From Adineta vaga (taxonomy: Eukaryota; Animalia; Rotifera): a stretch of 64,000 bases of DNA. Numbering within the stretch: the stretch's first letter is position 1; each line of letters opens with the position of its first letter. Below are positions 5,064 to 62,498 of this stretch, piece after piece. Location: assembly GCA_021613535.1 (NCBI GenBank), contig CP075494.1, positions 806,001 to 870,000 of the forward strand. The letters run 5' to 3'. A program made the translations under genes and the position numbers. The notes beneath the pieces are model-generated. The model saw only the letters and a program-made list of their open reading frames with translations. It made no database searches and was not told where the DNA came from.

Positions 5064-5124
5064 ATATGGGTGGGTGTGGGCATTGCTGCCTGCTATTTAT
5101 CACTATAACTACACTCACATCTAT
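5064..5124. repeat. Telomeric-repeat palindrome copy (degenerate)
   Basis: ATATGGGTGGGTGTGGG ... ACACTCACATCTAT. Confidence 0.55.
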
Positions 5125-6088
5125 ACAATTTTACTACTGAGGTTGTATTATATCCACTTACCACTGGTTGTTCAGTAAAACCATTTGGTACAGGAATATC
5201 TATGGCAAGTATTTCTTTCTGTTCACAAATCTCAGTACTTTCATCTATAAAGTTGTTTTTTGTATCGAATCTGTCGGAATCTTTTACTGCTCGTTTACAA
5301 TAGGCAAGAAAGAGTTTGTTGTAATGTTTCACTTCATTCTCATCTGAAAAACAATTTTTGTCTATGCATGTCGTTGTTTCAATAAAATTTTGCAGGGAAC
5401 GCTTGGACTCAATAGTGTCTCGAGCATAACGGTGCAATTCATTTTCGTAAGCATCAATGCAATCTGGATCGTCTCTATAGCTTAAGTAAAGAAGCGCTTC
5501 ATCCAGTGAGAAACCATATTTGTCGGCTATTATGGAGAGATCCTTTCTAAACTGTAAATTTGATAAGTGCTGATGTAATCGGTCATATGGCTCGTAATTG
5601 TTCGCATTTTGGACACTTTGTTTACTTTCTAAATGGCGAACATCGTCGTACATAGTATTGAGTAGTTCACTAATAAAACGATGTTTGACGATCAATGATG
5701 GTGTTTTTCTAATGTCGGATAACTTCTCTTTCACAAGAGTCACAATCTTGTTTCCGTATTCTGCCTGAACTGGATCGATAAGACTGATAAATACAGCAGT
5801 CAAGCCAGTGACAAGAAAGCTCAAAGAAATCGGTTTTTGGCCATTGAGTATTTTGGCCAAAACTTCGAGTTGACGATGAAGACGACTTACTGATCGAATT
5901 TCATCAATAGATTTCTGCCGTATTACTTCAAGTTTAGACACCTGCTTGCCAAGTTTATCAGTATCCTCTCCCTTATTACAAGATTTTAGATGTGTGAATA
6001 TTTCATGCAGAGTTGTGTCGTCGGAAAAAATATGTGCATCGATCAGATACTGAACAATAGCTTGAATACGTTCGACGACTGAGTCCAT
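5093..6088 (-). CDS. Hypothetical helical protein (331 aa ORF; 3' end probably spliced at GTAAGT 5161)
   Basis: Long ATG-started ORF with protein-like composition; no family recognised. Confidence 0.6.
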   Translation of the reverse strand: MDSVVERIQAIVQYLIDAHIFSDDTTLHEIFTHLKSCNKGEDTDKLGKQVSKLEVIRQKSIDEIRSVSRLHRQLEVLAKILNGQKPISLSFLVTGLTAVFISLIDPVQAEYGNKIVTLVKEKLSDIRKTPSLIVKHRFISELLNTMYDDVRHLESKQSVQNANNYEPYDRLHQHLSNLQFRKDLSIIADKYGFSLDEALLYLSYRDDPDCIDAYENELHRYARDTIESKRSLQNFIETTTCIDKNCFSDENEVKHYNKLFLAYCKRAVKDSDRFDTKNNFIDESTEICEQKEILAIDIPVPNGFTEQPVVSGYNTTSVVKLYRCECSYSDK

Positions 6089-6613
6089 CGTTCAATTGAT
6101 TATCTAGAAAAAACGATAAATCGCTCCTTAGTTTGATGATATATATATATAACAGATCTCAAAAAGTATGAAACGTAAAATATTGCGAGGTTTACATGGA
6201 TATAGTCAACATTTCAGAAAAAAGATATCTTATGAAAGAAATTCGGTCTTTTAAAAATGCATTCTCATCAAACAACGCAGAAGGGGGATCATTTCTTTTA
6301 CTTCGTATTATATATGTATGTTGCAAGACGATAGAATAGAGGCATGATTACGGTCGTTTCTAAATCAACAAAAGCTACTTTTAGATGCTCACCATCGTTA
6401 AAAAGTGTGCCGGTGAATAATCTGGTGAAAAGAAAAGAAAACAATTCATCAAGGTTGCAGCTAATGCAAAAGAGTCGACTGAGTGAGAAACAAAAAGCAC
6501 AACGAGATTGCTTTGTGAAGAGAAGAACACTCTCATATTTTTAAAAAACACATAAAGTATTCTTTCTTTTATCATTACTACGAAAGTTCTTTAGCTGTTG
6601 CCGCTTCTCAACT

Positions 6614-7453
6614 ATGCTGGACGCTAATATCGTTTCTGATGCCTTTCGTATTACAGAAGAACTCTCTTTGCATGCTACAGATATTGTTGTGGAACATTCA
6701 CGGAATTCATCAATGAATTCGCGTGAGATATCCTTTCTCACGTCATTGGAATTGGGCGACTGCCAAGATGAAGAAGAGTTAACCTTGACAATCAATTTTT
6801 ATATTTTATGCTTTCCGGAAGAAACTGTTGATGCATTTTGCAAGCTGTTTTTGAAAATGTTTCCGATTGTCTATGATTCTCTTAAAAAATTTGAACAAAA
6901 GCATTTAAAAACAAATCTATTCAGTGAATTACTCGAAATACCAGTGGACAACGTACATGGATTTCTTCACGAAAACAAATGGAGTCCTAGACGACACTAC
7001 ACCGCCTCTATGCTGAAAATATTGTTTGAACGTACTGAACCATCCTACCATGATATAACAGCCAAGGAAGAGATGTACCTAATGCAACAATTCAAGATTT
7101 CAGAACCTAATGAATGGAGTGCAAGGGAGAAGTATGAAAGTAGAAGCAAAGTTCGATCGCAACTCTTTGCATTGTTCCGCGTCTTTCGTGACGTAGGTGA
7201 ACGATATGGTTTTACTGATACAAAAGTGTTCATTAAATATTTACTTGATAAAAAGGAACGAAATAAGAAAGTTCATTTGACAGAAGCGTTTCGTAGTGTC
7301 TGGAGAACTACAGACAGTGGGACAAGCATAGTTGGCAGTTTCGATTCATTTCTAAAGGATGTAATAAGCCTACCTATTGAGATCTGTCCCGATCATCTCT
7401 TATTTACTAAATCTTTCAAACATCGTTGCATGTCACAAGCCGACGACTGGTAA
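6614..7453 (+). CDS. Hypothetical protein (279 aa ORF, possibly one exon of a spliced gene)
   Basis: Long ORF divergent from 5093-6088; no family recognised. Confidence 0.55.
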   Translation: MLDANIVSDAFRITEELSLHATDIVVEHSRNSSMNSREISFLTSLELGDCQDEEELTLTINFYILCFPEETVDAFCKLFLKMFPIVYDSLKKFEQKHLKTNLFSELLEIPVDNVHGFLHENKWSPRRHYTASMLKILFERTEPSYHDITAKEEMYLMQQFKISEPNEWSAREKYESRSKVRSQLFALFRVFRDVGERYGFTDTKVFIKYLLDKKERNKKVHLTEAFRSVWRTTDSGTSIVGSFDSFLKDVISLPIEICPDHLLFTKSFKHRCMSQADDW

Positions 7454-8305
7454 TACTTAATAGAAAAACAACCTTAGTTTTTAGATTTTCTATGAGTTAT
7501 TTTCGAAATAGGTTCAAAGCAAATGACGATGTATTAGTAAATATGAGTGCAGTTGGCAACAGTATTACGACTACGCAATCAAACACAGAAGTGAGTTTAC
7601 CGACTGATTTGAATATTTCCAATGTAGCTCAGATATTTTCCCGGTTAGAAAAGATGAAGTGTGTTAATGTAAGTATGGGTTTGAGTTAATGGATATAAAT
7701 GTTTCTTGGCTATAGTAGCATGAAAGTCACAGTCACTCACTTATCCACAACCACATTCGCCTAAGAAAAATATGTTTAATAGTCTCAAAATAATCTCCTA
7801 CTTATGTTATCAGCTCTATAATCAATATCAGGTAAACTTTACGTTGGAATATGACGAACTTAGCTGAGAAAGTCTTTTAGAACTAACTATTGTTAATTCT
7901 TTTGATAAATCAATGCTAATATATTTCAACATCGTTCTTTCTCTATTATAGGATGCCATGGTAGAAGCAAAATTTCTGCGAAAATATCCGAGCACATTCC
8001 AGCCGGACACTTATATAGTTCGACCAAAAAACCAGACAGTAACAAATAAAACAGGCAAAGCGAACATTCACCGACCTCGAAGTCCGCATTCGCCACATTA
8101 GAACTCACATTATACTGTGTGTTTTTGTTTATTGCTTTTACTCCTTTTTCGTAAGAACATTTTAGGCCTCCTTTAGATGAGTAATGAAATAAATTGATGA
8201 TATAAGAGCGGTTCGTTCAAACGGATAACTTTTGTTGAGAGAGCTCTTAGTGATTAGAGACCAGTGCTCGATGGTGATCGAATATGAAGCGATATACATA
8301 TACGT

Positions 8306-8394
8306 CGAGGGTGTGGGTGTGGGTGTGGATGAGTAAGTCAGTGTTTCTATCCATTCACACCCATATACACTCACACACACCCACGCCCTTAAGA
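8306..8394. repeat. Telomeric-repeat palindrome copy
   Basis: GAGGGTGTGGGTGTGGGTGTGG ... CACACACCCACGCCCTTAAGA. Confidence 0.85.
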
Positions 8395-8611
8395 TGGCAC
8401 GGCCTATGTGGCAGACATGGATAATCATCGAATAATGTGCTGGTGTCCGGGAGATAGATGTGGAAGCATTGTTCTTGGAGGAAACGGTCAAGGAAAACAA
8501 GCGAATCAGCTTAATAAGCCAATAGGTTTATCGTTCGATCGATGGGGAAATCTCTACGTGGTCGACTCTGAAAATCATCGGGTGCAACAGTTCCAGCTTC
8601 AAAATTCGTAG
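8393..8611 (+). pseudogene. 5'-truncated NHL-repeat gene fragment
   Basis: DGTAYVADMDNHRI...NQLNKPIGLSFDRWGNLYVVDSENHRVQQF*; begins directly after the palindrome with no upstream NHL sequence. Confidence 0.7.
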
Positions 8612-9196: not shown

Positions 9197-9246
9197 GAGG
9201 GTGGGTGTGATTGTAAGATAGATGAAGTACCCACACCCACACCCTC
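9197..9246. repeat. Telomeric-repeat palindrome copy (spacer family C)
   Basis: GAGGGTGGGTGTG-ATTGTAAGATAGATGAAGTA-CCCACACCCACACCCTC. Confidence 0.85.
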
Positions 9247-9319
9247 CTGAAAGAAATATAACTTTTATATGTTCGATTTTGAATGTGTATACGTTGTCTT
9301 TATTTAAGACAGAGGGGAG

Positions 9320-9391
9320 AATCGGATAGTTTAATTGGTAGAATAGCCGACCGGTTATCGGAAGATGTAGGTTCGAGTCCTGCTCTGTTTC
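9320..9391 (+). tRNA. tRNA-like gene or pseudogene; nominal anticodon GGT (Thr), identity uncertain
   Basis: Cloverleaf: acceptor AATCGGA/TCTGTTT (1 mismatch), D arm GTTT-AATTGGTA-GAAT, anticodon stem CCGA/TCGG with loop CCGGTTA, T arm GTAGG-TTCGAGT-CCTGC. Confidence 0.65.
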
Positions 9392-9530
9392 TATAATCCT
9401 TCTTCAATAGGTTACTCGTACTTATTGACGCGTATTTGTGGATACATTCTAATCAAACTTTAAAAGAGTTTCATCGTGGACAAGTCTTAAAGATCAATAA
9501 TTAGAAGTCTTTCTACTTTTATTTCAAACA

Positions 9531-9558
9531 CAACCACACCCACACCCACCCACACCCA
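9531..9558 (-). repeat. Single-arm telomeric repeat tract
   Basis: CCACACCCACACCCACCCACACCC; a second degenerate C-rich arm lies at about 9670-9708. Confidence 0.6.
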
Positions 9559-13248: not shown

Positions 13249-13295
13249 TTGAGGGTATGAGTGGTTATTTATCCTTCACTCACACCCACCCTCAA
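13249..13295. repeat. Telomeric-repeat palindrome copy
   Basis: TTGAGGGTATGAGTGG ... CACTCACACCCACCCTCAA. Confidence 0.75.
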
Positions 13296-13404
13296 CATCT
13301 ATCTACTTTTATTTCATATGCGATAATAATTATTTAATGAAAAAGGAAATATTAAGTTTTCAATTCGTTATAAATTCATCGGTAGTTGTTGTATATTCTT
13401 CATA

Positions 13405-14057
13405 TTAATGTTTAAAACCAAGTATTCGACGAATAATAACACCAATTTTTACGATAATTCTTATCAAAGTTAATGGAAATCCAGATGGATAAGTTTGAGC
13501 ATTATCAAAAAGTAAATAAAATTGCCAAATAAACTTATGTTCATCGCGTGAAATACCAAGATAATTTTCCAAGAATGCTAGTCGAATTCCATTATATCGA
13601 TTAGTTGGTTCAACACGGAAGCGAATAATTAAATCTTCTCTATTATGTTCCATCTAAAATATATGCGCATAGGGTGTGGGTGTAAGTGTGGTTGCAGAAG
13701 AGATGTTTACACCCACAACCACACCCACCCTATCGTATAAATAAATTTAAGAAGATTTTCTCATTTATATGAAATCTCTTTTCACTATGATTGATAATAT
13801 ATAGTAAACAATCATCGTTATCTTACTTTCACTTGTTGTTATTTTCGATATATATCTGGTTCAATGTTTGGATTCTCATTGGTCCGTATCACTATAAATA
13901 GACATTATGAAATATATCATCAATTTTCTCAATGATTCCTATTGACACTCACTCTTCGTATATCGCATAAGAAAGAAACCACCAATCGTTAAAATAACTG
14001 TAAAACAAATGATACATGTAATTAATAATGTTTTTCGTCGTCGAAAAGGTGCTCTCC
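13405..14057 (-). CDS. Small multi-exon protein with one predicted TM segment, unknown function
   Basis: Exons near 13955-14057 (RRRKTLLITCIICFTVILTIGGFFL), 13827-13890 and 13405-13653 with GT-AG borders; start unresolved. Confidence 0.5.
13669..13733. repeat. Telomeric-repeat palindrome copy (intronic)
   Basis: ATAGGGTGTGGGTGTAAGTGTGG ... ACACCCACAACCACACCCACCCTAT. Confidence 0.85.
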
Positions 14058-15506: not shown

Positions 15507-15577
15507 GAGCGCGTGTGGGTGTGAGTAAGAGTAAGAGAAGAATAGATATAAATATCTAAGCCCACACCCTCAAGATG
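15507..15577. repeat. Telomeric-repeat palindrome copy
   Basis: GCGTGTGGGTGTGAG ... CCCACACCCTCAAGATG. Confidence 0.75.
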
Positions 15578-17216
15578 CGAATCTTTGTCGTAAGATTTAC
15601 AAATGAGAAATATAGTTTGTGAACTATATTAACTGTCAAAGAAGACATGTCTTTTATACTTTAATCTTCTATCGCTAATATGTTTAATCACGTAGAACGA
15701 AAAGAATCATACAGACGATAAGATGATTGAATAAAACTATGAATGATTTCTGTTATAATCATGGGAAATACGATGTAGTTGATTCGAACAAATCGCTTTT
15801 CTTTCCTTGTTTATATTGATAATATAATATAAGTATGAGAAATGTAGTTACTATCGTAATTCCAACAAGAGAAATGAATAAAATACAATATGTTTTGAGT
15901 CTTGTTATATGGTTGAGATCATAATTCCGATCCTTTCCGAGGATAATCACAATGTCGACAACATTTATAAATCTGATCGAATTAAATTATAAAAAATTTC
16001 AAATACTTGGAAAATAAATCATCAAATTCTTTCTGGTGTTTTCTTCTAGCTATTCTTAGAGTCCGTGATGTTGACTGATACGTTTTGTTTAATTTCATAA
16101 TATATTCAGTTACGATAGATCTATCATCAACCTATCGTCTAGAACATTAATTCTTTAAATTAGTATCCATAATCTATTCTTGATACGATCTTCAACATCG
16201 GCCAATAGAACATGACAATGACACATAACACGTGTCATCGATTTTCGTAGAATAATAATTCCAAAGACAAATGACAAAGAACAAATGAAATATAATGTAA
16301 AAATAAGAACCACAGTCGTTGAAATATATCAATCAGGTTTTTCTTCCGAAAGAATTTTTTTAAATAACGACGACATATCGAAAATTTTGTTTGTTTGATT
16401 ATTTTGGATTTACCTTTCGACATCATGAAAAAGAAATGAAAGAAAACATTAGTCATCATATTATTGATATTTCTTTTCCCTTCAATTCATTTTCTATAAA
16501 TCGAATCAAAGAGTTTTTTTCTTTGGATGAAAACTATAGAAATAAATTAATCTTCAAAATATATTATATTTGTTCACCTGTCGATAAAGTCTATATGGGT
16601 TGAGATGATTGTAAATAGATGGATGTTTAATAATGGTTAGTTATACTGACAAGAATATTAATACAAATCATCGGAAGAATTCCGCGATCAGTATTTCGAA
16701 CACGTTTACAGAAACTATCTGTTTTTTTGTAATGTTATTTTTACCGATGACACGTACCATTGTTATTTTATCTTTTCTATTGTGGTATATTCTTTTTCAA
16801 TTAAAAATATAAAATAAGCTAATAAATTTAATAGAAATAGTTGTATTATTTAGTAAATATTTTAAATCTAAAAGATAATCAAAGAAAAATTTCTTTATAA
16901 ATAAACAATGAAAAGAAATATTTTATTATTTTATTGAAAATTATTTAATAAAGAACTAAATAAATATAAAAAAACCAAAAGATTTTATTAAATTTTCTTT
17001 TAAATATTGAAAATTAAATAATCAACAGAATTTTTGTTCTTTTATTCATTAATTTCAATTTGAAATACAGATTTCAAAAACTTCAATAAAAAACTAATTT
17101 TATTGAATAAAGATTTATTTGAATTTATTTTTATTTAAATATTTTCATCTTTCTTCATCAAATGCAAAAATTTATTTTCTTTTTCTTTTAAAAATTATTT
17201 CACTTTTTATCAAGTT

Positions 17217-19203
17217 TTATTCATATAATTCCGAACTGTTGAGAGAACCACCATTGAATCCACCAGTAACTAAAACCGTTCCATTTGATAAAATTGTTGC
17301 TGTATGATAATATCGTCCAACTTTCATATTGTTTGTTATTGTCCAATTACCTGTTGTTGGATCATATAATTCAGCACTGTTGAGAGGACAACAACCACCA
17401 GTAACTAAAACTGTTCCATTTGATAAAATTGTTGCTGTATGATAAAATCGTCCAACACTCATATTCTTTGTTGTTGTCCAATGACCTGTTGTTGGATCAT
17501 ATAATTCAGCACTGTTGAGAGAACCACTATTCAATCCACCAGTAACTAAAACTGTTCCATTTGATAAAATTGTTGCTGTATGTGCATATCGTCCAACACT
17601 CATATTCTTTGTTGTTGTCCAATGACCTGTTGTTGGATCATATAATTCAACACTGTTGAGAGAAAAACTATTCAATCCACCAGTAACTAAGACTGTTCCA
17701 TTTGATAAAATTGTTGCTGCATGAAGATATCGTCCAACTTTCATATTGTTTGTTGTTGTCCAATGAGCTGTTGTTGGATCATATAATTCAGCACTGTTGA
17801 GAGAAAAACTATTCAATCCACCAGTAACTAAAACTTTTCCATTTGATAAAATTGTTGCTGTATGAGAAGATCGTCCAACACTCATATTCTTTGTTGTTAT
17901 CCAATGACCTGTTGTTGGATCATATAATTCAACACTGTTGAGAGAACCAACTCCACCAGTAACTAAGACTGTTCCATTTGATAAAATTGTTGCTGCATGA
18001 AGATATCGTCCAACTTTCATATTGTTTGTTATTGTCCAATTACCTGTTGTTGGATCATATAATTCAGCACTGTTGATAGCACCACCTCCACCAGTAACTA
18101 AAACTTTTCCATTTGATAAAATTGTTGCTGCATGAGAATATCGTCCAACATTCATATTTCCTGTGTTAATCCATCCTAAAAAAGAAAATTGATTTGAATA
18201 AAAATAAATGAATTAAGAAAAGGAAACCTTTCGATTGATAAATAATTAAATCAAATTTAATTAATTGATGATAATTTTGATTAATAATAAAAATATTTCC
18301 AAATGAATCAAATGAAATAGTTGACGGAGAATTTAATTGTGAATTTGTACAACCAATAATACAAAAAAATCCATTTTGTTTTTGTTGAATAATTCTTTGA
18401 TTATTTGAATCAATAATAAATAAAAATTGATTCAAATCTAAAATAATATCCGAAGGACAATTTAAATTAATTGTAAAATCTAATGAATGATTTCCAACAA
18501 TAGTTTGACCAATAAAAGATTCCGATTGAAATAATTGAATTCGATTATTATCACAATCAGCAACAAATAAATTTTGATTAAATTGATCAATAAAAATTCC
18601 TTTTGGATTTGAAAGTGTTGTTGATGTTGAACCTTTTGTTCCTGTTCCTGCAATAATCATTAAAGGATTCCAAGAATAAATTAATGATTTTGAAAGAATT
18701 TGATGTCGAGTTGAAATTGAACAAAAAAGATTTTGATTTTCATCAATAAAAATATCAAAACATTGTTCACATAAATTCATTTGTTTTTTTATTAAATTTG
18801 TTGAATTCAGTTCCATTTGACTAACACCACTATTGAATTCAAATGTATCAAAATATATTTCATTTGTTTCTCCGATAAAAATACTTGATGAACTTATTGA
18901 AGTATTTATTTTTAATATCAAAGTTCCTTGAAGAGAAAGGAGAAGGATTTGTTTTTTTTCTCGATTTGGAATAAAAATTGTATTATTTTTATCAATAAAT
19001 AAATCCGAAGGAAATAAACCAATTAATGTTTCATTTGCAATTATTGTTCCATTTGGATTCCATGATGAATCAAATGAGATTGACGGTTGATTATACGAAA
19101 TTCCTTTTTGAAAAAGAAAAAGATCAAAAATAATAAAAAATTGAAATAAAATTTTACCTTGAATTTGTTGAATTAAGAAAAAGAAAAAGATTGAAGAAAT
19201 CAT
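17217..19203 (-). CDS. Secreted NHL-repeat plus 7x Kelch-repeat protein
   Basis: Signal-like exon MISSIFFFFLIQQIQG, NHL exon, short intron near 18178-18228, then seven GRxxHxATILSNGxVLVTGG...LNSAELYDPTTGxW repeats. Confidence 0.88.
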
Positions 19204-20611
19204 TTTTATTATGAAAGAATTTTTTTGAAAATGTTTTTCTTTTTATATTTTGTTTTATAAAATAAAAATCATTTAACAAATATTCGAAGTTCATTAACCT
19301 TCCAAGAACTTTTCTTATTAAATCACACTTTTTTATTTTCTCAGAATTTCATTTTAAGACAACATTTCTGTTTGTTTAATTGAACAATATAAACATAAGA
19401 TTCATGCATTAAAAAATCTATTTTTATAATTTAATAAATCAAGTTTCATCAATTAAATTTAACAATTTTTCTTTATTCTATCAATATATTTTCAATAAGA
19501 ATTGAAGTCAAAACATTTTCGTCTATCTTAAAGTAATTGAATTGAATCAGATGAAATGTCTTTAAATAGTCGTATATATTTTGTATTTATTCTTCGAAAA
19601 TAAACCTTATCTTTTTTAATCGTAATAATTGAAATTAATTCTTCTTTATTGTCCAACTATGTTATATTCAATATGATACGATTATATTAACTTTTTCTAT
19701 CGTGATGATAATACAAACCATTGGAAATATTCGAAGTTTTATCCTCGCTTATGATGATAATAGTTTGAATTGATGAAACATTCTTGTGTATTTAAAACTT
19801 TCGTGAACATTTTGATAAATTCTAATTTTTATATTGTGTAAATCAAGGTGGAATAATAAATGAGATTCTTTCTTGAAGATCTATTTGAACATCATTAACT
19901 TATTGTAATTCAATTCATTCAATAAAACTTCATTCAAATGCAAAAATTTCTTTACAAATTATTCGAATAATTTAAATAAAAGAGAAACTACAGATGGCAA
20001 CTGACTCACAATTTCTTCCTTGATCTCTATACAACCGAAGATTACAGAAGTAAAATGAATGCATAATTAGATTTATTAATAATTGAAAATTTCCGTACAG
20101 CAAAATACATATCAAAGGATCGAATATAACTTATTATCGAAGAAAATAAATATAAGGTTTTCGTTATAGGGAATATAAAGGTATCTCGAGAATCTTGATC
20201 AACTACTATATCGAGAAATCTCACTATGATAAATCAAGGCTATCGTAACCAAACAATAATGAAGATGACCGTGTTTATTGGGGGTAAACAGGGACAAATC
20301 AAGAACAAGAAACATTGGAGAAAAAGAGAAAAAGGCAACTTTATATGTGTAACAAGCATCTGATGCCTTTTTTGTAACGTTTTCCCGGAAATCACATGTA
20401 TTCAGATGTAAGATGAATTTCTCGGAAATCAAAAAAACATTTTCCAAGAATTCTTGATAGTCGAAGTCGTTACTCTAAACCCAATACAGGAAATTTTTAC
20501 TGAGGTTGCCATGAAGGGTGATGAAATTCATGTTTAGCACAGTCAAAACTATTTTCAAAAAGAGTTAGAAGAACTTCAAAAACTACTGTAACGGAATTTA
20601 TTGTGAAAGAT

Positions 20612-20672
20612 GAGAAGGATGGGTGTTGGTGTTCGTTAAAGGTAGAATGATCACACCCACTGACACCCTCAA
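20612..20672. repeat. Telomeric-repeat palindrome copy (degenerate)
   Basis: GGATGGGTGTTGGTG ... CACACCCACTGACACCCTCAA. Confidence 0.65.
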
Positions 20673-20786
20673 TCTTAATCTTTCTTTTCTCAGTTGATCA
20701 GTTAACATATCCAGTTTTTTTGGTAGCTCTTTGATATAATCGACCAAAGTTTAGTAAGTGTGCATCGTGAAACTCACTAGGTATTA

Positions 20787-20879
20787 CTTGAGGGTGTGGG
20801 TGCGTGTGGCTGTGGCTGTGAGTTAAGTGTATAGCTTGACCGACACTCACACCCCCACACCCACCCACACCCTCACAAG
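20787..20879. repeat. Telomeric-repeat palindrome copy (spacer family A)
   Basis: CTTGAGGGTGTGGGTG...GTTAAGTGTATAGCTTGACCGACAC...CCCACACCCTCACAAG. Confidence 0.85.
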
Positions 20880-21215
20880 GCGATCGTCGTATCAAACAAT
20901 CTCATCTTCAAATCGATGGATACTAAACACGTCTTCTTCGCGTCAAATTGCTGCAAAGACAGGGAAATCGTTCCAATGTTTCGTCAGTTGAAAAATGGGC
21001 AGCTTATTGAAATTAACTGTCGAAACCAATAAAAGATTACAACAAGTATACCCATGGAGTTGAACGATGCACTCAAATGATATTCTGCTATATTTTTCAT
21101 CACAAGTCTAGAAGAAATTAGCTTCGGCTTTTCGTTTTTTTCTTCAATGCATCCATTGCGAACTGATTTATCTGCAACACTCAATTAGCTCAGAAGCAAT
21201 TATTTGGCTGTGCTA

Positions 21216-21423
21216 CCCTCTAAATAAAAAAGGTAAGGTGGCCGAACCCATCAAAAAGGGTTTCGTAGACGATGGTTCGGAGTGTGTACCCGCGGTCAGA
21301 TCCTTTTTAGGTTTCGTAGATTTTGAAAACCATTTCTTTCGATTTTTCAACGCATTCTGAAGCTTTTGAAATCTACGAAACCCTTTTGATGGTTTTGGTA
21401 ATACACCTTTTTTATTTAGAGTG
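21216..21423. mobile_element. MITE with ~55-bp imperfect TIRs flanked by TA
   Basis: CTCTAAATAAAAAAGG...CCATCAAAAAGGGTTTCGTAGA versus TCTACGAAACCCTTTTGATGG...CCTTTTTTATTTAGAG; TA on both sides. Confidence 0.7.
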
Positions 21424-21461
21424 TAGCTAAGTCTCTCTGTTTTGGCGCTGAACGGAAAGAT

Positions 21462-21680
21462 TTGAGGAGGCCACCGTTAGGCAAGAAGCGTAAATTGGTA
21501 AAGTCACAATCTGCTGTTCAACTGGAGAAGGGAATGCATCTGACTGTCAATGGAACACGAAAAGGATGTGCCTCTGGTAGCACAAAAGAAGTGCAAGTTC
21601 GATCAAGCATTGAATGCTCTACTTGCAAATGGGCTTTTTGCGTAACGTAGGAGAGAAGCTGTTTCTTGCAATACCATACG
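21462..21680 (+). pseudogene. piggyBac-like transposase C-terminal cysteine-rich domain remnant
   Basis: MHLTVNGTRKGCASG...RSSIECSTCKWAFCVT*ERSCFLQYH resembles the PGBD C-terminal Cys-rich domain; in-frame stop. Confidence 0.65.
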
Positions 21681-22136
21681 GCTTTTATGTGAGCATTTTG
21701 ATTGAGATTGTAACGATTTTTGAACTGGACTCGAGAGACAGATACTGATACTGTATATATTTTATTCATGAAAGAGCACACACTACTGTCTATTCCTCAT
21801 CTTTTATATAGCAGAAGGAATATCCAGTATCACACTATATCTGGTCAGCTGATCAAAACAAACTAAGTACATAGAAATATGAACTATCTAAGTGCAAGCT
21901 GAGGACAGAAAAAGATACAAACTATCTAAGCGCAAATTAAAAGAACACAGGTGAGGACGTGATAGATCGTCACACAGATCCAATAAAATGATGAAAAGAA
22001 CCAGTTTTTGATACAAAAAACTGTCCTAGAAGAGTTTAAATCTTTTCTTAGATACAGAAGAAGCTCACTAATATACGATGACGAATGTTGATGATTATAC
22101 ATGAAACGAAAGTGTTGTATATTGTCTTAAAAAACA

Positions 22137-22394
22137 TTAAAATTTACCACTAACCGATCCACCCACATCTGCATTAACACCGCATCCTGCATATGAGTCT
22201 GCCTCTCTCTGACGGCAATACTGAACACAGTCTGGTGAAGCCTTGTCTAGGGCGCAAAGCCGCTTGCATTTCATGTAACGGTAACAAGGATCGAACCAAC
22301 TATGCCAACCACCAAAGATGCCATTGACGGAGACTGCACAGAACCATAGACAAATAACCAGAGTGACAAGCAACGTTCGATTAAAAGCCATCAT
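22137..22394 (-). CDS. Small secreted cysteine-rich peptide (85 aa)
   Basis: Hydrophobic signal peptide ending VSVNG; six Cys in the mature part including two CxxxC motifs. Confidence 0.7.
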   Translation of the reverse strand: MMAFNRTLLVTLVICLWFCAVSVNGIFGGWHSWFDPCYRYMKCKRLCALDKASPDCVQYCRQREADSYAGCGVNADVGGSVSGKF

Positions 22395-22761
22395 TTTGTA
22401 TTGCTGGTTGTGTGTAAGGTGAGCTATTATAAGTCAACCCGAAGCCAATGTAATTCACTCAGTCAGTATGTCTGACAAAGCTTGTATTCGAACGAGAGAA
22501 TGAATCAATAAGCGGCGCACCGTTTATTTATACCGTCACACTGATGCTCTTATTGCACGTACTTGAGACCAAGAATATCAAGGTTTGCGATTTTTCTTCG
22601 GTAAAAATCATGCATATGGAAAGGTTAACAGGTTACGAGATAGTGTGAACAAATATTCGCTTGTGTAAGATTGTAAAATTAGTAATCGATGCGAAAATTG
22701 GCGAGCTTACATATATGTTAAAAGAAACTCATAAAACGTTGAAAGGTTACTATATTCAAAT

Positions 22762-23053
22762 TAGATTCTACCAGGACTTGTAAAAAACAAAAAGAGAAGT
22801 GACTTTACATCAGTCATAAATGAAGTACGAATAATAACTGTTTACTATAATTAGTAGTTTCAGAGCTTTCGAGCCGTCATAGGGTAATCTCTAGTGCGAA
22901 TCGGTATTGCCTGTGTGTGCACTCAGATGATACGATATTCAGAGACAAAGTTGTCTGAACTGATTTACAATGATCAGTTATTATTCGTACTTCGTTCGTG
23001 ACTGATGGAAAGTCATTTTTCTTTATGATTTCCGCAAGTCCTAGATGAATCTA
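22762..23053. mobile_element. Foldback/MITE element with ~80-bp TIRs
   Basis: TAGATTC..AGGACTTG...TGACTTTACATCAGTCA...GAAGTACGAATAATAACTG versus CAGTTATTATTCGTACTTC...TGACTGATGGAAAGTCA...CAAGTCCT..GAATCTA. Confidence 0.7.
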
Positions 23054-23337
23054 TTATTAAATCTAATTCTAGTTGCTTTTATTACATTTTTATCATCCTA
23101 TGAGTTCTGCATGTCTTCTTTTCAATTTATTCTACTGCTAATTAACATGATACTTGAAATACTCTGCACCCATGTAGAATATACACGCCAGTTCTCTGCT
23201 TAAAAAACAAGTAGTGCTCATCGGCTTCCGATTTACTTATCCCTACACTGAAAATTGGGACATCACTCTCCGTTTCGTATTTTTGTTAAGAGTGCCAGTA
23301 TATGCCTGTCATATTCACTCACATTTCGACAGAGTAT

Positions 23338-23420
23338 AGGTGGGTGTGGGTGTGAGTGTGGATTCTACATCTATCTAACACCCCACACTCACACCCCTCA
23401 TACCCACACCCACATCCTCG
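23338..23420. repeat. Telomeric-repeat palindrome copy (spacer family C, inverted)
   Basis: GGTGGGTGTGGGTGTGAGTGTGG-ATTCTACATCTATCTAACA-CCCCACAC...CCCACACCCACATCCTC. Confidence 0.85.
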
Positions 23421-23870
23421 AACTGATGATGGTAAATTTTATGGTCATGGATCAACATGTCTAAGAAAGCAGGATATTATTCGAAGAGAAACACAACAAG
23501 AATTCTTTCAATATTTAGTTTCATTCTTACTTACTACTTTAATGATTTTCTTATCGCCAATTTCTTTCCCTACGAATTGGTGGAAAAAATTAGCTATTGA
23601 AGGATTTCTTTGGATCGTTATTTATATTCTTGTTAGAAAAAGCGAACGACACATACGTAATTATAGGAATAAGAAAAATAATGAGCGTTTACAAAAACTG
23701 TGTCCAATGAAGAATTTTCAAATCTGCGATCAGACAGACATGCGAAAATTTTTAAAATATTCCTAAATTTCCATAAAAATTGTCTATTGTTATGGTCAAA
23801 ATCTCCAGCGGATTCGTTGAATAACATTCGTTAATTCTTTTCGATATACTTCCGATGGCAGAATAAATAC

Positions 23871-23938
23871 GGTGGGTGTGGGTGCGTGTCGGTGAGGGTA
23901 TGAATGATAATGGAGAAAAGACCCACACCCACACCCTT
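23871..23938. repeat. Telomeric-repeat palindrome copy
   Basis: GGTGGGTGTGGGTG...GAGGGT ... ACCCACACCCACACCCTT. Confidence 0.85.
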
Positions 23939-24935
23939 ATCTGAAAAATTTCATCAGCTAAGAGTCTAGTCAGTGTTAAAAAAATTTATGTTTAACTTCA
24001 AACATTATTTATTCTACATGTACCATGTCGTAGTAAAAAAAACTCAATTTTTACGAAAGATCTTCGAGAAAAATATAGAGAGTTCATTTGTAACGAGAAC
24101 TTTTGCCCAAATGAATTTGAAAGAATTCATATGTTCAAAAGTCAAATGAAAATATTTGTTTATGATAAAGCTGTCAGAAAGATTTAGATATTAAAAGAAA
24201 GTCAATCAATAGAGTATATTTATTGATATAATGATATATGAAATGTACATTTAATATCAGGAATATTATAGTCAAGCTTATCAAAATATAAGAGAACAGA
24301 TTGTAAATAAGCGGGTAGGAATACATAACAATATTTTGAGGGTGAGAGTGTAGAGTTCACTAGAATATTCCAAGCTGGACTTACGACGCATTTCGACTGA
24401 TGTTTAACCAATGTGTTTGTTGGCCCTAGTAAGACAGTGTATATGTGGGATGAAAAAAGAAAAAAAGTAGGAAATTGTATTTGTGTCTGTTTTTTTGGTT
24501 GGGCAGAAATGGTTATGGAAGTGAATGTAAATGATGAGAGTTATTTTTATCAAATTAAGAAAAAATCTGTATGACAAGAGTGAGGAACAAAAGTAATTGT
24601 CTTCGTATGACTTTGTTACGGAATGTACAACGCGTACGTGTCTATATCTACGATATTGTGGACGAATGTTCAATGAATCAGATCGAGTTGATGGTTGTTG
24701 TGATTGATATTGATTCCATTTTTGTTAACATTTCTCGTGAGGGTTTCTTGTGTGATGTAGAAACATTAACTATTTACCGTTTTCTTTCTATTCTCTCTTC
24801 AGGGTTACCAACTGTGCCCCATTTAGACTTTTAAGTCTGACGCGGATATAACTAATCTTCTAGTGAAAATAATATATGTTTTGTCTTAGATTTTTGTCAT
24901 CTAATAGATGCATCTGTATTAGAATGTCTTTGTAA

Positions 24936-25002
24936 TAGGGATGTAACAATACCAATACCAAAACCAATACTCCAATACCGTATTGGCATCGTTACATCCC
25001 TA
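24936..25002. mobile_element. Mini palindromic element with hAT-like TAGGGATG termini (copy 1)
   Basis: TAGGGATGTAACAATACCAATAC...GTATTGGCATCGTTACATCCCTA; second copy at 61569. Confidence 0.75.
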
Positions 25003-25178
25003 GTTTTCGTTTAATATAAATAAAGAATTCTTGTCACAACTTAATTGTTATTTTCATTGAAATTTAGTTTTGTAACATAACAAAGAAGAAAAACAATTGA
25101 CAAAATGGAATACCTTTCTTTCTCTTTCTAACAATTGTAGAATCATTACAAGAAACTATAACTCCTCTCACATTGCAA

Positions 25179-25236
25179 TCTTGAGGGTGTGGGTGCGAAT
25201 TAAGAATGTAGTCTCACTCAGACCCACCCCTCAAGA
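25179..25236. repeat. Telomeric-repeat palindrome copy with both termini
   Basis: TCTTGAGGGTGTGGGTG ... GACCCACCCCTCAAGA. Confidence 0.85.
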
Positions 25237-25678
25237 ATATTTTCAATAAAGTTTCATTTTGAATTTTAGCAAATAATGATTTAATAAGGTTAAATGTTCT
25301 CTCTTCTACGATATTCCATGATCTTTATCTTAGAATATGATCGTTCTCAAAGAAATGAATATTCTTAACTAAAAATAATTTCGAATTTTTTATAAAATCA
25401 TGAAAGTTAGTTTCTTTTTACTTTATAATTATATACTTTTACACGTCCGTAATAATCAAGTGTTTCTTAATAAAACACGTCTATACTTTCATTTCTTCTT
25501 TTATCTAACAATTAATGACATAAAAATGGATTCATCTTTATTCTTAATGATCAATTATAAAAACAAGTCTCTTCATAATAAAACTATATATCTCGACGGA
25601 GATTCTCTTTTACATTGGTAGAGATATCATTTTTATTAGAGAAAAAAACCCAGACGGGTGCACACATACATTCCAGCT

Positions 25679-27106: not shown

Positions 27107-27157
27107 AGGGTGTGGGTGTAGGTGTGTGAAAGAACAGGAGATACCCACACCCACCCA
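27107..27157. repeat. Telomeric-repeat palindrome copy (spacer family B)
   Basis: AGGGTGTGGGTGTAGGTGTG-TGAAAGAACAGGAGATA-CCCACACCCACCC. Confidence 0.85.
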
Positions 27158-41582: not shown

Positions 41583-41624
41583 TGTGTGTGGGTAACAGAA
41601 GATATGAGTACCCACACCCACACC
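41583..41624. repeat. Telomeric-repeat palindrome copy at GH3 truncation point
   Basis: TGTGTGTGGGTA-ACAGAAGATATGAG-TACCCACACCCACACC. Confidence 0.8.
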
Positions 41625-42937
41625 ACGATCTGTAAATGTACGATTAATGGAAATATAATCTTTTTGATTGGTAATATATCGAATTTGAAGATGATTATCT
41701 CGACCTTTTTGCATCAATGCCGTGAGAGGATCTATAGCATAAGCTGGTCGAACAAAACTTGAACCACCACCCTGATATAATGCACTTCCAAAATCTTTAT
41801 TCCATGCTGTTTGCTCAAGGCCACAAGTCGTTTGACCAGCTGCTTGCCCATATATATAAATGTTTGTATCAACGGAAGAATTTAATGGCAATGCATTGTT
41901 GACATTTTTCAGTAATATCATACCAGCGCGACTGGCTTCTCGATTAATTATATAATTATTTTCTATCGCATTGCGATCAAGATCAACTGTTGGATAATTT
42001 TGATCTTGTCTAATAAGATAGTAAGGTGCGATAATGCGTGTAACCATATCATCAATTCTTGATTCAGGAATGCTTCTATTTTGAACAAATGATACCAAAG
42101 TATCACCCATATATCCATCGATACCGGACATATCAATATCTAGTCCTGATAAAACTGGATCAACTGTTGATGTGGATCCCATCCAATCCGTCAATTATTA
42201 ATTTCATTGGCTGAACACATAATAGAACCTACTCCAGCAGCCACACTTGATGCAAATGGCCAAAGATAAATCGCATGCATAGTTTTATCGTCAAGATTGG
42301 CTGAGTAAACTATGTCATCATTAGCATCTTTCATGACACCACTTCGATGCGTATCTTGCTCATTACAGATATAATGTTTTGCTGTAGCAACAACACCGTA
42401 ATCTTGAATACCTTGAGTATAGAAAAATGCATCTTCACCTGAAAGATATGGATCCGAACCAAATCCTTCCCAGTTACGACCATGCCGAGCATTTCGATCC
42501 ATGTTCACCATAGGACCAAGTGCATAATGCACACCTTTGCCACGAAAGTCTTTTCCAATTGCAACAGCACGTCGATAAAACAAATTTCGATGCCATGTCG
42601 CTACAATATGAATACCACTTACGAATGCAGTTGAAGATAAAACACCATCACCAACACCTGATGGTGTATCGAGAAGGCAGAAACCACTAAAATTGACACG
42701 TGGTAACGATGCAATATTGCCAGCGCATGTCCCACCGACATCTGCTGTCAAATGACATTTTTCTTCTAAGGTCAATTGTATAATAAATGATTTGGTCATG
42801 GCAATAGCTTATTTCCATGTTCTTAGTGTCACTTGTGATTGAAGATTTCTTTTGCAATTATCTATCACCGATGACATAGAGGAGAAACAAATTACAACAC
42901 AAACCAACAACAGAGGAGTCGTTAATATTTTATTCAT
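41625..42937 (-). pseudogene. GH3 beta-glucosidase pseudogene (intronless, probably of non-metazoan origin)
   Basis: GRNWEGFGSDPYL, ATAKHYICNEQ, TDW nucleophile, GLDIDM, LLKNVNNALPL. In-frame TAA at 42809-42811, deletion/frameshift near 42192, similarity ends at the palindrome. Confidence 0.88.
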
Positions 42938-44347: not shown

Positions 44348-44495
44348 TTTAGAAATTCTGGCTTTTCTTTTACAGTACACTTTCTTTCTGTTTGCTTTCG
44401 TCTATTTGATTTAAATTTTATTGAATATGAATCAATGTGACGAAAGCAAACAGGTATTGCAATAATTGACTTTTCTTTGCTGAAAGAGAAAACAA

Positions 44496-44519
44496 CTTGA
44501 GGGTGTGGGTGTGGGTGAG
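44496..44519 (+). repeat. Single-arm telomeric element
   Basis: CTTGAGGGTGTGGGTGTGGGTGAG with no nearby C-rich arm. Confidence 0.75.
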
Positions 44520-44822
44520 AAAAAAAATTGAATCTTTTCTTCGTATATGAAGTTGCTAGATCAATTCATCTCACTATTGGCAAACGCAGAAAATACCTGT
44601 CTTCCACAGTTGAGGGTAAAGTGAGTCGACACGACGAGCGTTACTTGTAAGTAGACGTACATGTATGTTTTTCTTCGCTTCTGTTATTTTAACATTATAT
44701 GTTTGTACAGTGCAAAATGAAATTTTTCTCCATACGGCGTCATGACGATTTTGTTTCGTCAAGATGCATGCATATAAAAGAAATGATGTTTTAATCAATT
44801 TCATTACGACAAAAAATCAACT

Positions 44823-46777: not shown

Positions 46778-46820
46778 GAGGGTGTGGGTTAAGAGTATAG
46801 CCTGACGCACACCCACACCC
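46778..46820. repeat. Telomeric-repeat palindrome copy (spacer family A)
   Basis: GAGGGTGTGG-GTTAAGAGTATAGCCTGACGCAC-ACCCACACCC. Confidence 0.85.
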
Positions 46821-46822
46821 AA

Positions 46823-46915: not shown

Positions 46916-46921
46916 AGGATG

Positions 46922-46984
46922 TGAGGGTGTGGGTGTGGGTGTGGGTATCTCCTCTTCTTTCACACCCATACTCACACCCTCAAG
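46922..46984. repeat. Telomeric-repeat palindrome copy (spacer family B, inverted)
   Basis: TGAGGGTGTGGGTGTGGGTGTGGG-TATCTCCTCTTCTTTCA-CACCCATACTCACACCCTCAAG. Confidence 0.9.
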
Positions 46985-47578
46985 TCAAAAAAATGTTTTT
47001 CTGAGAGGGGCCTTAATCAAGTATGTTTCCGCGAATAGAATCATTTTCTTTTATTTATTTTTAGATTTTTAGATTTACATTGGACAAAGTATTGAGGTAT
47101 TGAAATAATATTTAAACTGACAAATATTTAAGAAATAAAGTTCCTATTTCTAGCACAATAAATCTTTTCTTTACATGCATTTTATGATGAGAATATCGAC
47201 AAAAACAAATCTGGATTTTTTCTCTCATTTGTTCTATAAATTCATCAACTTTTTCTAAAATCGTATAAATTTTGTTGTCTGTTAAAAAAGACTTTTTCCC
47301 GTGGTGTTTTTCACAATTACAGGCAGTTGTCGTGTTCGTATTTAATCGAATGAAAATGTTCTCATGAATAATTCGTTGTGTAAAGAGAAAAATAAATTCA
47401 CAATTATTCGATATTGATAATGGTATTTCTAAAAATACATCGAAGAACTTTATACGATCATCAAAATGCATTGTTGATACACTTGTAAAAATTTATTATA
47501 TCTAACAATTTTCTCTACTAATAAAAACTCTTCTTGATCATATAAACTTGAATTTGAAGATAAAAAAATATCATTGAA

Positions 47579-55355: not shown

Positions 55356-55412
55356 CATCTTGAGGGTGTGAGTGAAGGTGTAAAACGTTCACCGCACCTA
55401 CACCCTCACGAT
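55356..55412. repeat. Telomeric-repeat palindrome copy with both termini
   Basis: CATCTTGAGGGTGTGAGTG ... CACCTACACCCTCACGAT. Confidence 0.8.
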
Positions 55413-55788
55413 CTGGTATTTTCCTTTGATCTTTCGTTCTACACATATATGGTATACTACCTCGATTCTTTTTTGTTCATGAAAGAGAAAAACGAATAAC
55501 ATATAGTATCCACATAATTTTAAATAAATCATCATTTGTTTCTAACTATCAAACTCAATTCTTTCGATCATACAAGAATTGCTGTAACAATATTGCTTCG
55601 TCAAAGGAACGAAACATAAGATTAATTACTGACGATGGCAATGAACGATGAATTTATTATTGAAAAACTAGAAATGTGCAATGTTTTCTTTTTTCATTTG
55701 AGTTTCAGAAAAAAGAGGGAAATACGAAGAATGGGTAGCAAGGTGTCATATGTTATTGTTCTGTGGATGATCTTGTTGGCTTATATCA

Positions 55789-57386: not shown

Positions 57387-57436
57387 GAGAGTGTGGATGA
57401 AGATACAGTAAAAACCAACCTCACCCACACCCTCAA
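57387..57436. repeat. Telomeric-repeat palindrome copy (degenerate left arm)
   Basis: GAGAGTGTGGATG ... CCTCACCCACACCCTCAA. Confidence 0.7.
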
Positions 57437-57521
57437 AGAAAAAGCATAAACACCGGTGTCAACAGCATTTGTCAAAAAACATCGACTATATCGAGAATTT
57501 TCATGACAGATTTATGAGATT

Positions 57522-60892: not shown

Positions 60893-61568
60893 ATTGATAT
60901 ATCGACATTTTTCCAAAGAAATTTCCAAGCTTGCATTTTCAAAACATTCATTAGTTTTCATTTTTTACAGATCAATCACGAGAATTTCTTTTCAAATCTT
61001 GGATTATTTTAATTTTTATAAATAAAATGTTCAACATTTCTATCATATTCTTGTATTTAAATGCATTCGTCTATTCTGCTCTGAAAAATGTAATCACCAT
61101 TTTCTGTTTTGAGATATTTTTTTTCTATTAAACTATTCATTTCTGGTGAATTGTATTGATATACATAAAATAAGTTGGTGGACGCACAACGAGAAAATAT
61201 TGCTGAATCATATTCACATAATCATTAGTTTTTTTGAACTCTATATGCCGCTCTTGTTCTTTAAAATATAATTCTAAATAGTGTATGAAAAAGAAAGAAA
61301 AAAAGATCATTCAGAAGCGCTCTTGACAATTGTCTTTTCCTCTTCATAGGTTTTATACAATTTGTCTTTGATCATTATTTGTTAGTAGAGTTTGAAACGA
61401 GAACGGATCTATCTACTAAAAGACAAATGTAAATGCTATGATAGAAACACTAAAGTTCACCAACTTCTACGGAGACATTCAATAATGTTTTTAATATTAA
61501 AGGGTGAATTTCTTGAAATCGTGTGTAAAAATAACGAGCTTGAATTAAATGAACAAGTGACTTCGCAC

Positions 61569-61623
61569 TAGGGATGTAACAATACCAATACTCCAATACC
61601 GTATTGGTATTGTTACATCCCTA
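61569..61623. mobile_element. Mini palindromic element with hAT-like TAGGGATG termini (copy 2)
   Basis: TAGGGATGTAACAATACCAATAC-TCCAATACC-GTATTGGTATTGTTACATCCCTA, near-perfect hairpin. Confidence 0.8.
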
Positions 61624-61869
61624 GAACAAAGGTATTAATCAGTAGAAATCAATGTTTACGTCAGTATTAATGTCGTCGTTATGTTTCGTGCGATGAAAGA
61701 TGATGTCAAATCAGTAAATATACTGGAAGAAATGTACATGATTATATTTACTTGCTTTTTCAATTACTATTTTTATTTAAGTGTCACAATTTGTCGAGGA
61801 TGAGGCCATATTTTCAATTTGAGTTTCTAATAAGTTTTTGAACATGATTATTTTGATTATCAACAACAA

Positions 61870-62430
61870 AAAGATTTCCTGGACGATCGAATGTTAAACC
61901 TCCTAAACGATTGAACTGATTTGAATCTGTTTCTTTTCTATTTCCACCAGCAACTACAGATATTTCTTTTGAATCAATTGACCAACGCATAACTCGATGA
62001 TTTCCACTATCACCATAACATAGATATTTCCTGATAAACTATATCCTTCTGTTGTATCACCAGCGAAATCAGTCCCATACTTAACACCGTTCATCACACG
62101 ATGATTATAATAATCAGCTATATAAACACATTGTTCATTATTATTATTCCCATCATTATCATCTACAACACAAATACCATATGATTGATTTGATTTAATT
62201 GATTACCTTCTCCATTACCTCCAGAAATCGTTATACCATTTCATTTCCATTTTGTATTAAGATTAATATTTGGTAAAATAGATAATTGTTTTAACATCTC
62301 TGTAAATGATATTTCTTCATTATTTTCCTCGATTTGTACTAAATGAACAAGAAATCGACCATCTGGGGATTTATTTACCATAAATAGCTTCAATAAGAAA
62401 AATGTTGAATTCTCTTTGTTCGCAAGAAAA
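61870..62430 (-). pseudogene. Degraded NHL-repeat gene
   Basis: NINLNTKWK*NGITISGGNGEGNQ...PYGICVVD...VYIADYYNHR...GDSGNHRVMRW with stops and frameshifts. Confidence 0.7.
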
Positions 62431-62431
62431 C

Positions 62432-62498
62432 CATCTTGAGGGTGGGTGTGGGTGAGAATCAGATTGATGGGTAAATGTGCTTTCCACACCCTCATAGA
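62432..62498. repeat. Telomeric-repeat palindrome copy
   Basis: CATCTTGAGGGTGGGTGTGGGTGAG ... CCACACCCTCATAGA. Confidence 0.85.

Follow-up and report, generated by a model that had tools for sequence, protein, structure and literature searches.

A 64-kb stretch of the genome of the bdelloid rotifer Adineta vaga (G000:C5:806001-870000, the whole of which we refer to as the window) carries a dispersed family of short palindromes, here called hairpins, in which a G-rich telomeric arm, a spacer and an inverted C-rich arm follow one another. We found that these hairpins stand at junctions between unrelated DNA and that whole units, spacer included, recur at many loci. We propose, with a probability of roughly 55%, that the hairpin is a non-autonomous palindromic unit, that synthesis primed by microhomology (probably reverse transcription) copies it onto DNA ends, and that it ends as a linker.

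Bdelloid rotifers are the textbook animals that survive the shattering of their chromosomes and hold much foreign DNA near chromosome ends, and we know of no established mechanism by which the shattered pieces are joined. The chromosome-level haploid assembly of A. vaga has (TGTGGG)n at every chromosome end, and its subtelomeric regions concentrate transposons and foreign genes (PMC8494291). TGTGGG is the bdelloid telomeric repeat, and the tails of Terminon elements contain TCACCC-type variants (PMC8494291, PMC6431247). The assembly analyzed here comprises 100.8 Mb in six contigs with a G+C content of 30%. The window is on contig C5 (16.9 Mb), at a distance of 0.8 Mb from its left end; together with the 200 kb upstream of it on C5 it forms a wider region of 264 kb on the left arm, near the chromosome end. 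Copies within the window are named by their window position and other loci by contig and position.

Abundance and polarity of the hairpins

An earlier note, made from the letters of the window alone, had listed 19 two-armed and three half copies, and all 22 show the layout that it gave. Its claim that the G arm precedes the C arm also held in the wider region, where 28 pairs run G-then-C, the head-to-head orientation of a telomere-fusion relic, and a single pair runs C-then-G. A seed scan for G-arm/C-arm pairs no more than 60 nt apart found 15 G-then-C pairs and one C-then-G pair in the window, whereas 50 dinucleotide shuffles contained on average 0.04 G-then-C pairs and never more than one. 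The strict pattern GAGGGTG-N10-40-CACCCTC matched twice in the window and never in 100 shuffles, and a genome-wide scan with a strict pattern returned 73 matches versus none for the reversed control. When folded, 18 of the 19 two-armed copies were more stable than their shuffles (z -2.5 to -9.7), the exception being the copy at 5064 (z -1.7).

Hairpin density across the 264 kb is roughly one per 5 kb. Approximately 20 arms in this region appear to be solo but have a recognizable decayed or degenerate partner; among solo arms the C orientation outnumbers the G orientation. The 20-mer end CCATCTTGAGGGTGTGGGTG occurs 89 times in the genome, versus 0 for its control, and 63% of these matches fall in the terminal 2 Mb of contigs, which together hold 24% of the genome. 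No terminal repeats were found at the contig end itself (C5:1-2500). Most hairpin copies are intergenic or located at pseudogene junctions.

Anatomy of the unit

The complete unit reads GAAAACCATCTTGAG-GGTG(TGGGTG)n-spacer-(CACCCA)nCACC-CTCAAGATGGTTTTC. It is non-coding and approximately 45-110 bp long, with a family-specific spacer of 13-60 nt. Outside each arm, reading inward, is a 15-nt leader of the sequence GAAAACCATCTTGAG, followed by GGTG(TGGGTG)n; leader and inverted repeat arms together give the unit terminal inverted repeats like those of a miniature inverted-repeat transposable element (MITE). The arrangement first described, (CATCTT)GAGGGTG(TGGGTG)n-spacer-mirror, was right as far as it went, the conserved end being longer and corresponding to the full leader. 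Arm repeat number is variable and can be as different as two and eight between 95%-identical paralogs.

Conservation stops sharply at the outer edge of the leader. Beyond CACCCTCAAGATGG the flanks are unrelated among the approximately 100 loci listed of 177, save for two pairs with identical flanks, which are duplicates. The excess of T that follows ATGG drops to background past GGTTTTC, and an attempt to extend the leader found no consensus beyond that point. Across 122 arms the match to the leader forms a nested series of 1 to 15 nt. The leader is usually shortened, partly by true truncation and partly by mutation, its length having been scored as an uninterrupted match that mixes point mutation in old copies with true truncation. 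The spacers, given in the earlier note by length alone (15-35 nt), are not arbitrary but form recurrent families that are purine-rich on one strand; recurrent types include TAGATAGATGTAGTAC, TAGATATGAGTGAAGAAGATATAC, AAAGAAGAGGAGATAC and TTAAGAGTATAGTCTGAC, and spacers are found in either orientation.

Copying of entire units

Both leaders are complete in the hairpin at C5:1734456, and at least 40 other loci match it with 84-98% identity over arm, spacer and arm, always with different flanks. The spacer family that we call delta is present at no fewer than 40 loci whose flanks are unrelated. Three unrelated delta loci (C2:720216, window position 25179 and C1:16084057) combine a canonical left leader with the right-leader variant CTCAAGAAT, and their orientation relative to the spacer is identical in all three. 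The spacer families, together with a leader variant tied to one of them, indicate that whole units have been copied. The variant in particular is hard to explain by arms made afresh and points to descent from a master copy. The orientation of the delta spacer is 14+/4- on left and 12+/10- on right chromosome arms, a bias that we estimate is not significant, and thus there is no sign of strictly terminal one-directional addition.

Plain telomere-telomere fusion is not supported, given the recurrent spacer families and the linked leader variant. A fusion relic, as a unique event, would have no shared internal sequence, which does not agree with the delta spacer at its 40 or more loci and the recurrence of other spacer families.

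Hairpins stand at junctions between unrelated DNA

Comparison of 60 kb of the window against the genome revealed that blocks of paralogous sequence end at arm edges in 11 places (9199, 9245, 9537, 15577, 23421, 27951/28005, 39098, 41582, 41623, 44498 and 55417). Chance would give fewer than one such coincidence, a rough expectation based on approximately 90 block ends and on the 0.8% of the window that lies within 5 nt of an arm edge. At 9197, 15507, 23338, 41583, 55356 and C5:1734456, the paralog of one flank continues into unrelated sequence exactly where the hairpin starts. The suggestion that the elements occupy junctions of unrelated DNA is supported.

At 11 informative junctions, paralogous DNA shows the other state. 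None of the 11 displayed a target-site duplication (TSD) or a clean empty site. Microhomology of at least 1 nt to the repeat or leader was present in 10 of the 11 and of at least 3 nt in six (range 1-5 nt), the letters common to the flank end and the leader or repeat including CAT, GAG, AAAAC, CC, CCAC, CCT, AA and TTTTC. These junctions agree with the ragged ends and lack of TSDs noted at the outset. At C5:660697 a 72-bp hairpin stands in place of approximately 85 bp of a 91-95%-identical paralog, while comparison of C5:618223 with 627280 revealed 1 kb of extra DNA between flank and arm. The paralogs at 617.8-618.5 kb and 625.9-627.6 kb, which are 95% identical, have in common a hairpin and approximately 320 bp of one flank, as far as the following hairpin.

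DNA and RNA-like contig sets were also placed on window positions 20500-26499 (6 kb). No contig there formed a clean joint skipping a hairpin. Many short contigs from other loci end at the arms, which represents cross-mapping.

A 3' module shared with Athena/Terminon and other retro-sequences

We recovered Athena/Terminon 3' ends by searching for telomeric repeats downstream of a hammerhead-core motif. They consist of CTGATGAG, a stem, CGAAAC, a six-base palindrome (ACGCGT or ACCGGT), approximately 13 nt and (ACACCC)n, a form that agrees with the published description (PMC6431247). Before passing into unrelated flank, 21 of these tails end in the nested series CACCC, CCCTC, CCCTCAA, CCCTCAGAGATG and CCCTCAAGA. 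The C arm and leader of the hairpins thus equal the reverse-complement telomeric 3' tail ends of 21 Athena copies, and the link to Athena/Terminon drawn in the earlier note is supported by this common end module. Two fragments resembling short interspersed elements (SINE-like fragments, 38894-39113 and 44493-44650) also end in the tail plus leader found in the hairpins. The half copies reported at 39088, 44496 and 9531 do lie at those places, but are really the tails of other sequences, namely these two fragments and a tRNA-bearing segment. Because Athena tails, SINE-like fragments and the 9531 tail share this end, repeat plus leader is a 3' module common to sequences that become attached at free DNA ends. 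Penelope-like elements that lack an endonuclease use reverse-complement telomeric tails to prime on the ends of chromosomes or on double-strand breaks (PMC3846280, PMC6431247).

The hairpins resemble Athena/Terminon in their (ACACCC)n or (TCACCC)n tail, in attachment to free DNA ends and in enrichment toward chromosome ends (PMC6431247, PMC8557442, PMC3846280), as well as in the CCCTCAAGA-type series in which the tails end. They differ in other respects. The hairpins contain neither a reverse transcriptase open reading frame (ORF) nor a 5'-truncated body with direct telomeric repeats, being non-coding units of 45-110 bp; their second arm is inverted, whereas Athena arrays carry telomeric repeats in direct orientation; and their spacers are unlike the Athena sequences found here. 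The hammerhead motif CTGATGA...GAAA was not observed beside hairpin arms, and an Rfam search of the window returned no hammerhead and only tRNAs. Outside the window, a sequence at C5:792080-792139 has the hammerhead core of an Athena/Terminon-type 3' end, with the palindrome ACGCGT at the would-be helix III; this assignment is by motif only and is unscored by Rfam.

Similar hairpins occur in low-G+C metagenome contigs, 10 of 54 of which have a CTTGAGGG or CCCTCAAG leader, versus 2 of 68 high-G+C contigs. Some of the low-G+C contigs have AAAGAGAAGAC-type spacers like those of A. vaga. These contigs provide a lead, and only a lead, that the unit may predate this strain.

Origin of the hairpins

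In the explanation that we favor, a free DNA 3' end would pair with the leader or arm through 1-5 nt of microhomology and be extended by a copy of the unit, and the far end of the copy would then be joined likewise to a second DNA end. Copying primed in this manner would leave units that are usually cut short at both ends, would generate no TSD and would often be accompanied by loss of target DNA. Since the copy is joined to a second end, its flanks would often come from different places, and the unit would be a linker at a break or rearrangement junction. Considering that the repeat-plus-leader end is the 3' module of Athena/Terminon and the SINE-like fragments, the copying enzyme would be an endonuclease-deficient Athena-type reverse transcriptase or telomerase. 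The template would be an RNA ending at the U-run of the leader, and the occasion may be break repair. We favor reverse transcription because the module is shared with retroelements that lack an endonuclease, because conservation ends sharply at the T-run, and because there is published evidence that such elements prime on breaks (PMC3846280). Of the origins proposed in the earlier note, an adaptor captured at breaks or a MITE-like hairpin, a reverse transcriptase-templated adaptor captured at breaks fits best; the units look templated or copied and not cut and pasted.

Several observations weigh against this explanation. The leader-variant argument stands on three loci, and the leader lengths of the 122 arms, being counts of uninterrupted matches, mix point mutation with truncation. 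The 13-mers beside the hammerhead in the Athena families found match no hairpin spacer. Among the contigs placed on the 6-kb interval we observed no new insertion and no present/absent allele, and neither of two sets had an RNA-like contig over a hairpin, contigs being poor for short or structured RNAs. Moreover, the 3' end of a perfectly paired RNA hairpin would be concealed in the hairpin itself and not readily available for priming.

A serious rival, although we consider it rather unlikely, is copying from DNA. A broken end would invade an existing hairpin via microhomology or a short telomeric stub, copy arm, spacer and arm, switch back and be joined, as in microhomology-mediated break-induced replication or gene conversion between hairpins. 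This accounts for the copying of units, the microhomology, the truncated ends, the junctions of unrelated DNA and the homology blocks bounded by arms, and is favored by the hairpin whose 320-bp flank is shared up to the next hairpin and by the lack of RNA-like contigs over hairpins. However, copying from a donor locus should often overshoot into the donor flank, whereas conservation stops after the 15-nt leader at nearly all of the approximately 100 loci listed of 177, and the end of the unit coincides with the T-run and 3' module of bona fide retroelements. It is less probable still that the hairpins are simple repair scars, in which each arm is a telomerase-added stub, the leader derives from the stretch of telomerase RNA immediately 3' of the template, and two stubs fuse head to head with no copying of units. 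The G-then-C polarity would then reflect two healed ends joined, GAGGGTG followed by (TGGGTG)n is what an RNA with the sequence CACCCACACCCUCAAG would yield, the breaks have microhomology to the repeat or leader, and solo arms carry the same leader. Mammals offer a precedent in the interstitial repeats that telomerase makes at breaks, with microhomology and nucleotides from beside the template (PMC2246262), although that precedent leaves inverted pairs and spacer families unexplained, and telomeric repeats and Athena fragments have been reported at A. vaga deletion breakpoints (PMC13564844). Random fusion of stubs would yield no spacer or a random one, yet recurrent spacers keep their junctions to both arms at many unrelated loci and the leader variant is tied to one spacer family and orientation. 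Such scars predict a telomerase RNA template flank of CUCAAGAUGG, and a search of 57 leader-bearing loci, which was not exhaustive, found no convincing telomerase RNA gene with the leader.

We do not believe that the hairpins are an ordinary MITE or foldback DNA transposon mobilized by a transposase that recognizes the terminal inverted repeat. The likeness is considerable: the units are small, palindromic, non-coding and high in copy number, they fall into subfamilies, their inverted ends are defined (15 nt plus repeats), and conserved ATCTTGAG ends are present in the low-GC metagenome contigs as well. Yet a transposon of this kind is difficult to reconcile with the 0 of 11 junctions that have a TSD or clean empty site, with flanks that are often mutually unrelated and match different paralogs, with the loss of one or both ends in most copies, and with solo arms and the tails of Athena and SINE-like sequences having the same end. 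Two end pairs 3.3-3.6 kb apart proved to be separate hairpins and not the ends of an autonomous partner (one pair was scanned for ORFs and has no coding capacity between its ends, the longest ORF being 84 aa), and no genome-wide search was made. Least probable, and very much so, is that the hairpins create or are introns, with GGTGAGT-like arms resembling splice donors, in the manner of introners. The copy at 5064 overlaps a predicted 65-nt intron, the 39088 fragment sits in an intron, and splicing could remove the copy at 41583 as a GT-AG intron of 49 nt. Most copies, in contrast, lie between genes or at pseudogene junctions, the gene around 41583 breaks off at the hairpin, and no spliced RNA contig was seen in 20500-26499. 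At 5064 the limits of the predicted intron are not those of the hairpin, and we rejected the introner idea because hairpin ends do not coincide with predicted splice sites.

Individual copies in the window

The leftmost copy (5064-5135) is a weak hairpin with the G arm GGGTGGGTGTGGG and a degenerate C arm. Its predicted GTAAGT...ATAG intron, running from 5157 to 5093 on the minus strand, would join two long ORFs (window 4323-6088, minus strand, no Pfam match) into an open frame of approximately 567 codons. If this predicted intron is real, the telomeric G arm of the copy would be coding (..MPTPTH..), and the statement in the earlier note that no copy lies in a confidently intact exon would need this qualification. 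The hairpin at 8306-8398 (z -5.1) has a near-full leader, CCCTTAAGATGG, at its right end. The next, at 9197-9246, has a TAAGATAGATGAAGTA-type (alpha) spacer, and both of its outer edges are ends of homology blocks: the left-flank paralog C4:14862204-14862652 stops at 9199 and supplies GAG, and the right-flank paralog C5:749239 begins at 9245. The latter opens a 293-bp segment (9245-9537) that is duplicated with 95% identity at C5:749239-749531 and contains a tRNA gene (9320-9391, plus strand, Rfam 45 bits). A telomeric C-strand tail ends both copies of the segment; in the window it is the solo C arm at 9531-9557 (plus strand), and the same tail recurs in the paralog at C5:749529, where a CTCAAGAT leader accompanies it. 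In the tail region the sequence is similar to the end of a particular Athena family (TATTTGTTCAAACACACCC).

The hairpin at 13249-13296 (z -5.7) reads TTGAGGGTATGAGTGG ... CACCCACCCTCAACATC, and that at 13669-13733 lacks the leader on both sides. At 15507-15578 the right end is CCCTCAAGATG, and homology to the paralog C1:744102 begins at 15577, straight after the leader. The duplicated block that begins exactly there contains a Kelch/NHL-repeat gene (16820-19416, minus strand) from a large family whose dozens of paralogs lie mainly toward contig ends. A hairpin with a degenerate G arm lies at 20612-20676 (z -3.3), followed at 20787-20880 (z -9.3) by one with a delta-like spacer, GTTAAGTGTATAGCTTGAC, and the left leader CTTGAG. 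The copy at 23338-23420 has an alpha spacer, CTACATCTATCTAA; three right-flank paralogs begin at 23421, and the junction has AA in common with the leader. The hairpin at 23871-23936 has no leaders, and the delta-family hairpin at 25176-25236 combines the left leader ATCTTGAG with the variant right leader described above. This copy and that at 23871 are unchanged in the DNA contigs of the 2015 and 2022 runs. Within 20500-26499, RNA-like contigs cover only 21693-22484 and a G protein-coupled receptor gene (25746-26396), and a short repeat at 21100-21500 has very high contig depth in the DNA runs.

The hairpin at 27107-27157 (z -5.5) has a purine-rich spacer, GAAAGAACAGGAGATA, and that at 27950-28005 lies inside a MITE-like repeat of approximately 690 bp (27573-28266). 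The repeat has TGAGCAATAA motifs inverted at both ends, and at least 15 copies with 87-93% identity are spread over all contigs. Most of the copies align across the hairpin, while several alignments break at 27951 or 28005-28009. As this repeat carries an internal hairpin, hairpins can also spread passively. The SINE-like retro-fragment at 38894-39113 (plus strand) has the tail CACCCACACCCTCACCC and the leader TCAAGATGGTT; five paralogs stop at 39097-39098, and the intron in which it sits is shorter in the C4 and C5 paralogs. The second copy (44493-44650, minus strand) ends in tail and leader (CTTGAG), and approximately 10 paralogs begin at 44498-44516. Sequence comparison revealed that 38894-39113 is homologous to 44518-44650 on the opposite strand. 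Members of this SINE-like family are 130-200 bp long with a G+C-rich core and an (ACACCC)n tail, and at least 5-10 more genome copies exist, some far from chromosome ends; the repeat lacks a hammerhead motif.

Between the two fragments, the hairpin at 41583-41626 links a truncated glycosyl-hydrolase family 3 gene to unrelated DNA, the left block stopping at 41582 and the right block beginning at 41623, with CCAC as microhomology to the repeat. The gene (Pfam Glyco_hydro_3_C, 41626-42800, minus strand) is cut at the hairpin, shows frameshifted decay beyond, and has paralogs on C2, C3 and C4. The delta-family hairpin TTAAGAGTATAGCCTGACG at 46778-46820, its leader reduced to GAG, matches the hairpin at C5:1734456 with 95% identity over 41 nt, whereas the flanks of the two are unrelated. 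It is followed by a well-preserved hairpin at 46922-46985 (spacer TATCTCCTCTTCTTT, z -9.7). At 55356-55416 the left leader is CATCTTGAG and the right leader is altered to CTCACGATCTGG; homology to the paralog C3:1747232 begins at 55417. The last two copies are a hairpin with a degenerate G arm (57387-57440, z -4.7) and one with the longest left leader in the window, GAAAACCATCTTGAG (62425-62500). Upstream of the window, a minisatellite at C5:764310-765030 is built of approximately 40-nt units, each with CACCCACACCCTCACTTTGCT, a telomere-like block followed by a fixed sequence.

Comparison with known systems and significance

Head-to-head telomere fusion relics of the human 2q13 type are the product of a single historical event between two chromosome ends and consist of long degenerate arrays. 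They resemble the hairpins in having G-strand repeats followed by C-strand repeats, but have no recurrent spacer, constant leader or copy family. TBE1 of Oxytricha is a kilobase-long telomere-bearing transposon that encodes a transposase and makes target duplications. Like the hairpins, it is mobile DNA whose inverted ends carry telomeric repeats; in TBE1 these repeats are at the outermost tip, whereas in the hairpins they lie inside a leader. The telomerase-inserted interstitial telomeric sequences (ITS) of primates and rodents, including TERC-ITS, are likewise telomeric repeats inside chromosomes without a TSD, with microhomology between break and repeat and a modified break site. They also have a few extra nucleotides copied from beside the RNA template (Nergadze et al. 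2007, PMC2246262), to which the leader may correspond. The microhomology to the telomeric template at 10 of 11 hairpin junctions matches this behavior. The hairpins, however, are not simple one-directional arrays made anew at each site. They are inverted pairs with a recurrent spacer and a constant 15-nt leader, are copied in families with dozens of members, and reach the density given above for the 264-kb stretch. In the literature searched we found no description of the hairpin organization, the 15-nt leader or the spacer families, although these may have been described elsewhere.

As a high-copy linker that lies exactly at the seams of unrelated DNA and has an Athena/Terminon end, the hairpin marks old junctions in the sequence. 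Published values of telomeric repeat density in these genomes largely count hairpin units and not former chromosome ends. The observations also provide a testable hypothesis, that joining may proceed by microhomology-primed, template-directed patching. More speculatively, and in our estimation unlikely, there could be a dedicated form of RNA-templated end joining, in which a hairpin RNA with telomeric arms and its 3' end at the leader U-run would be copied by an Athena-type reverse transcriptase or telomerase and serve as a splint that ligates any two ends. If true, this route would leave thousands of linkers and could help to stitch shattered chromosomes, captured genes and foreign DNA into chromosome-end regions.

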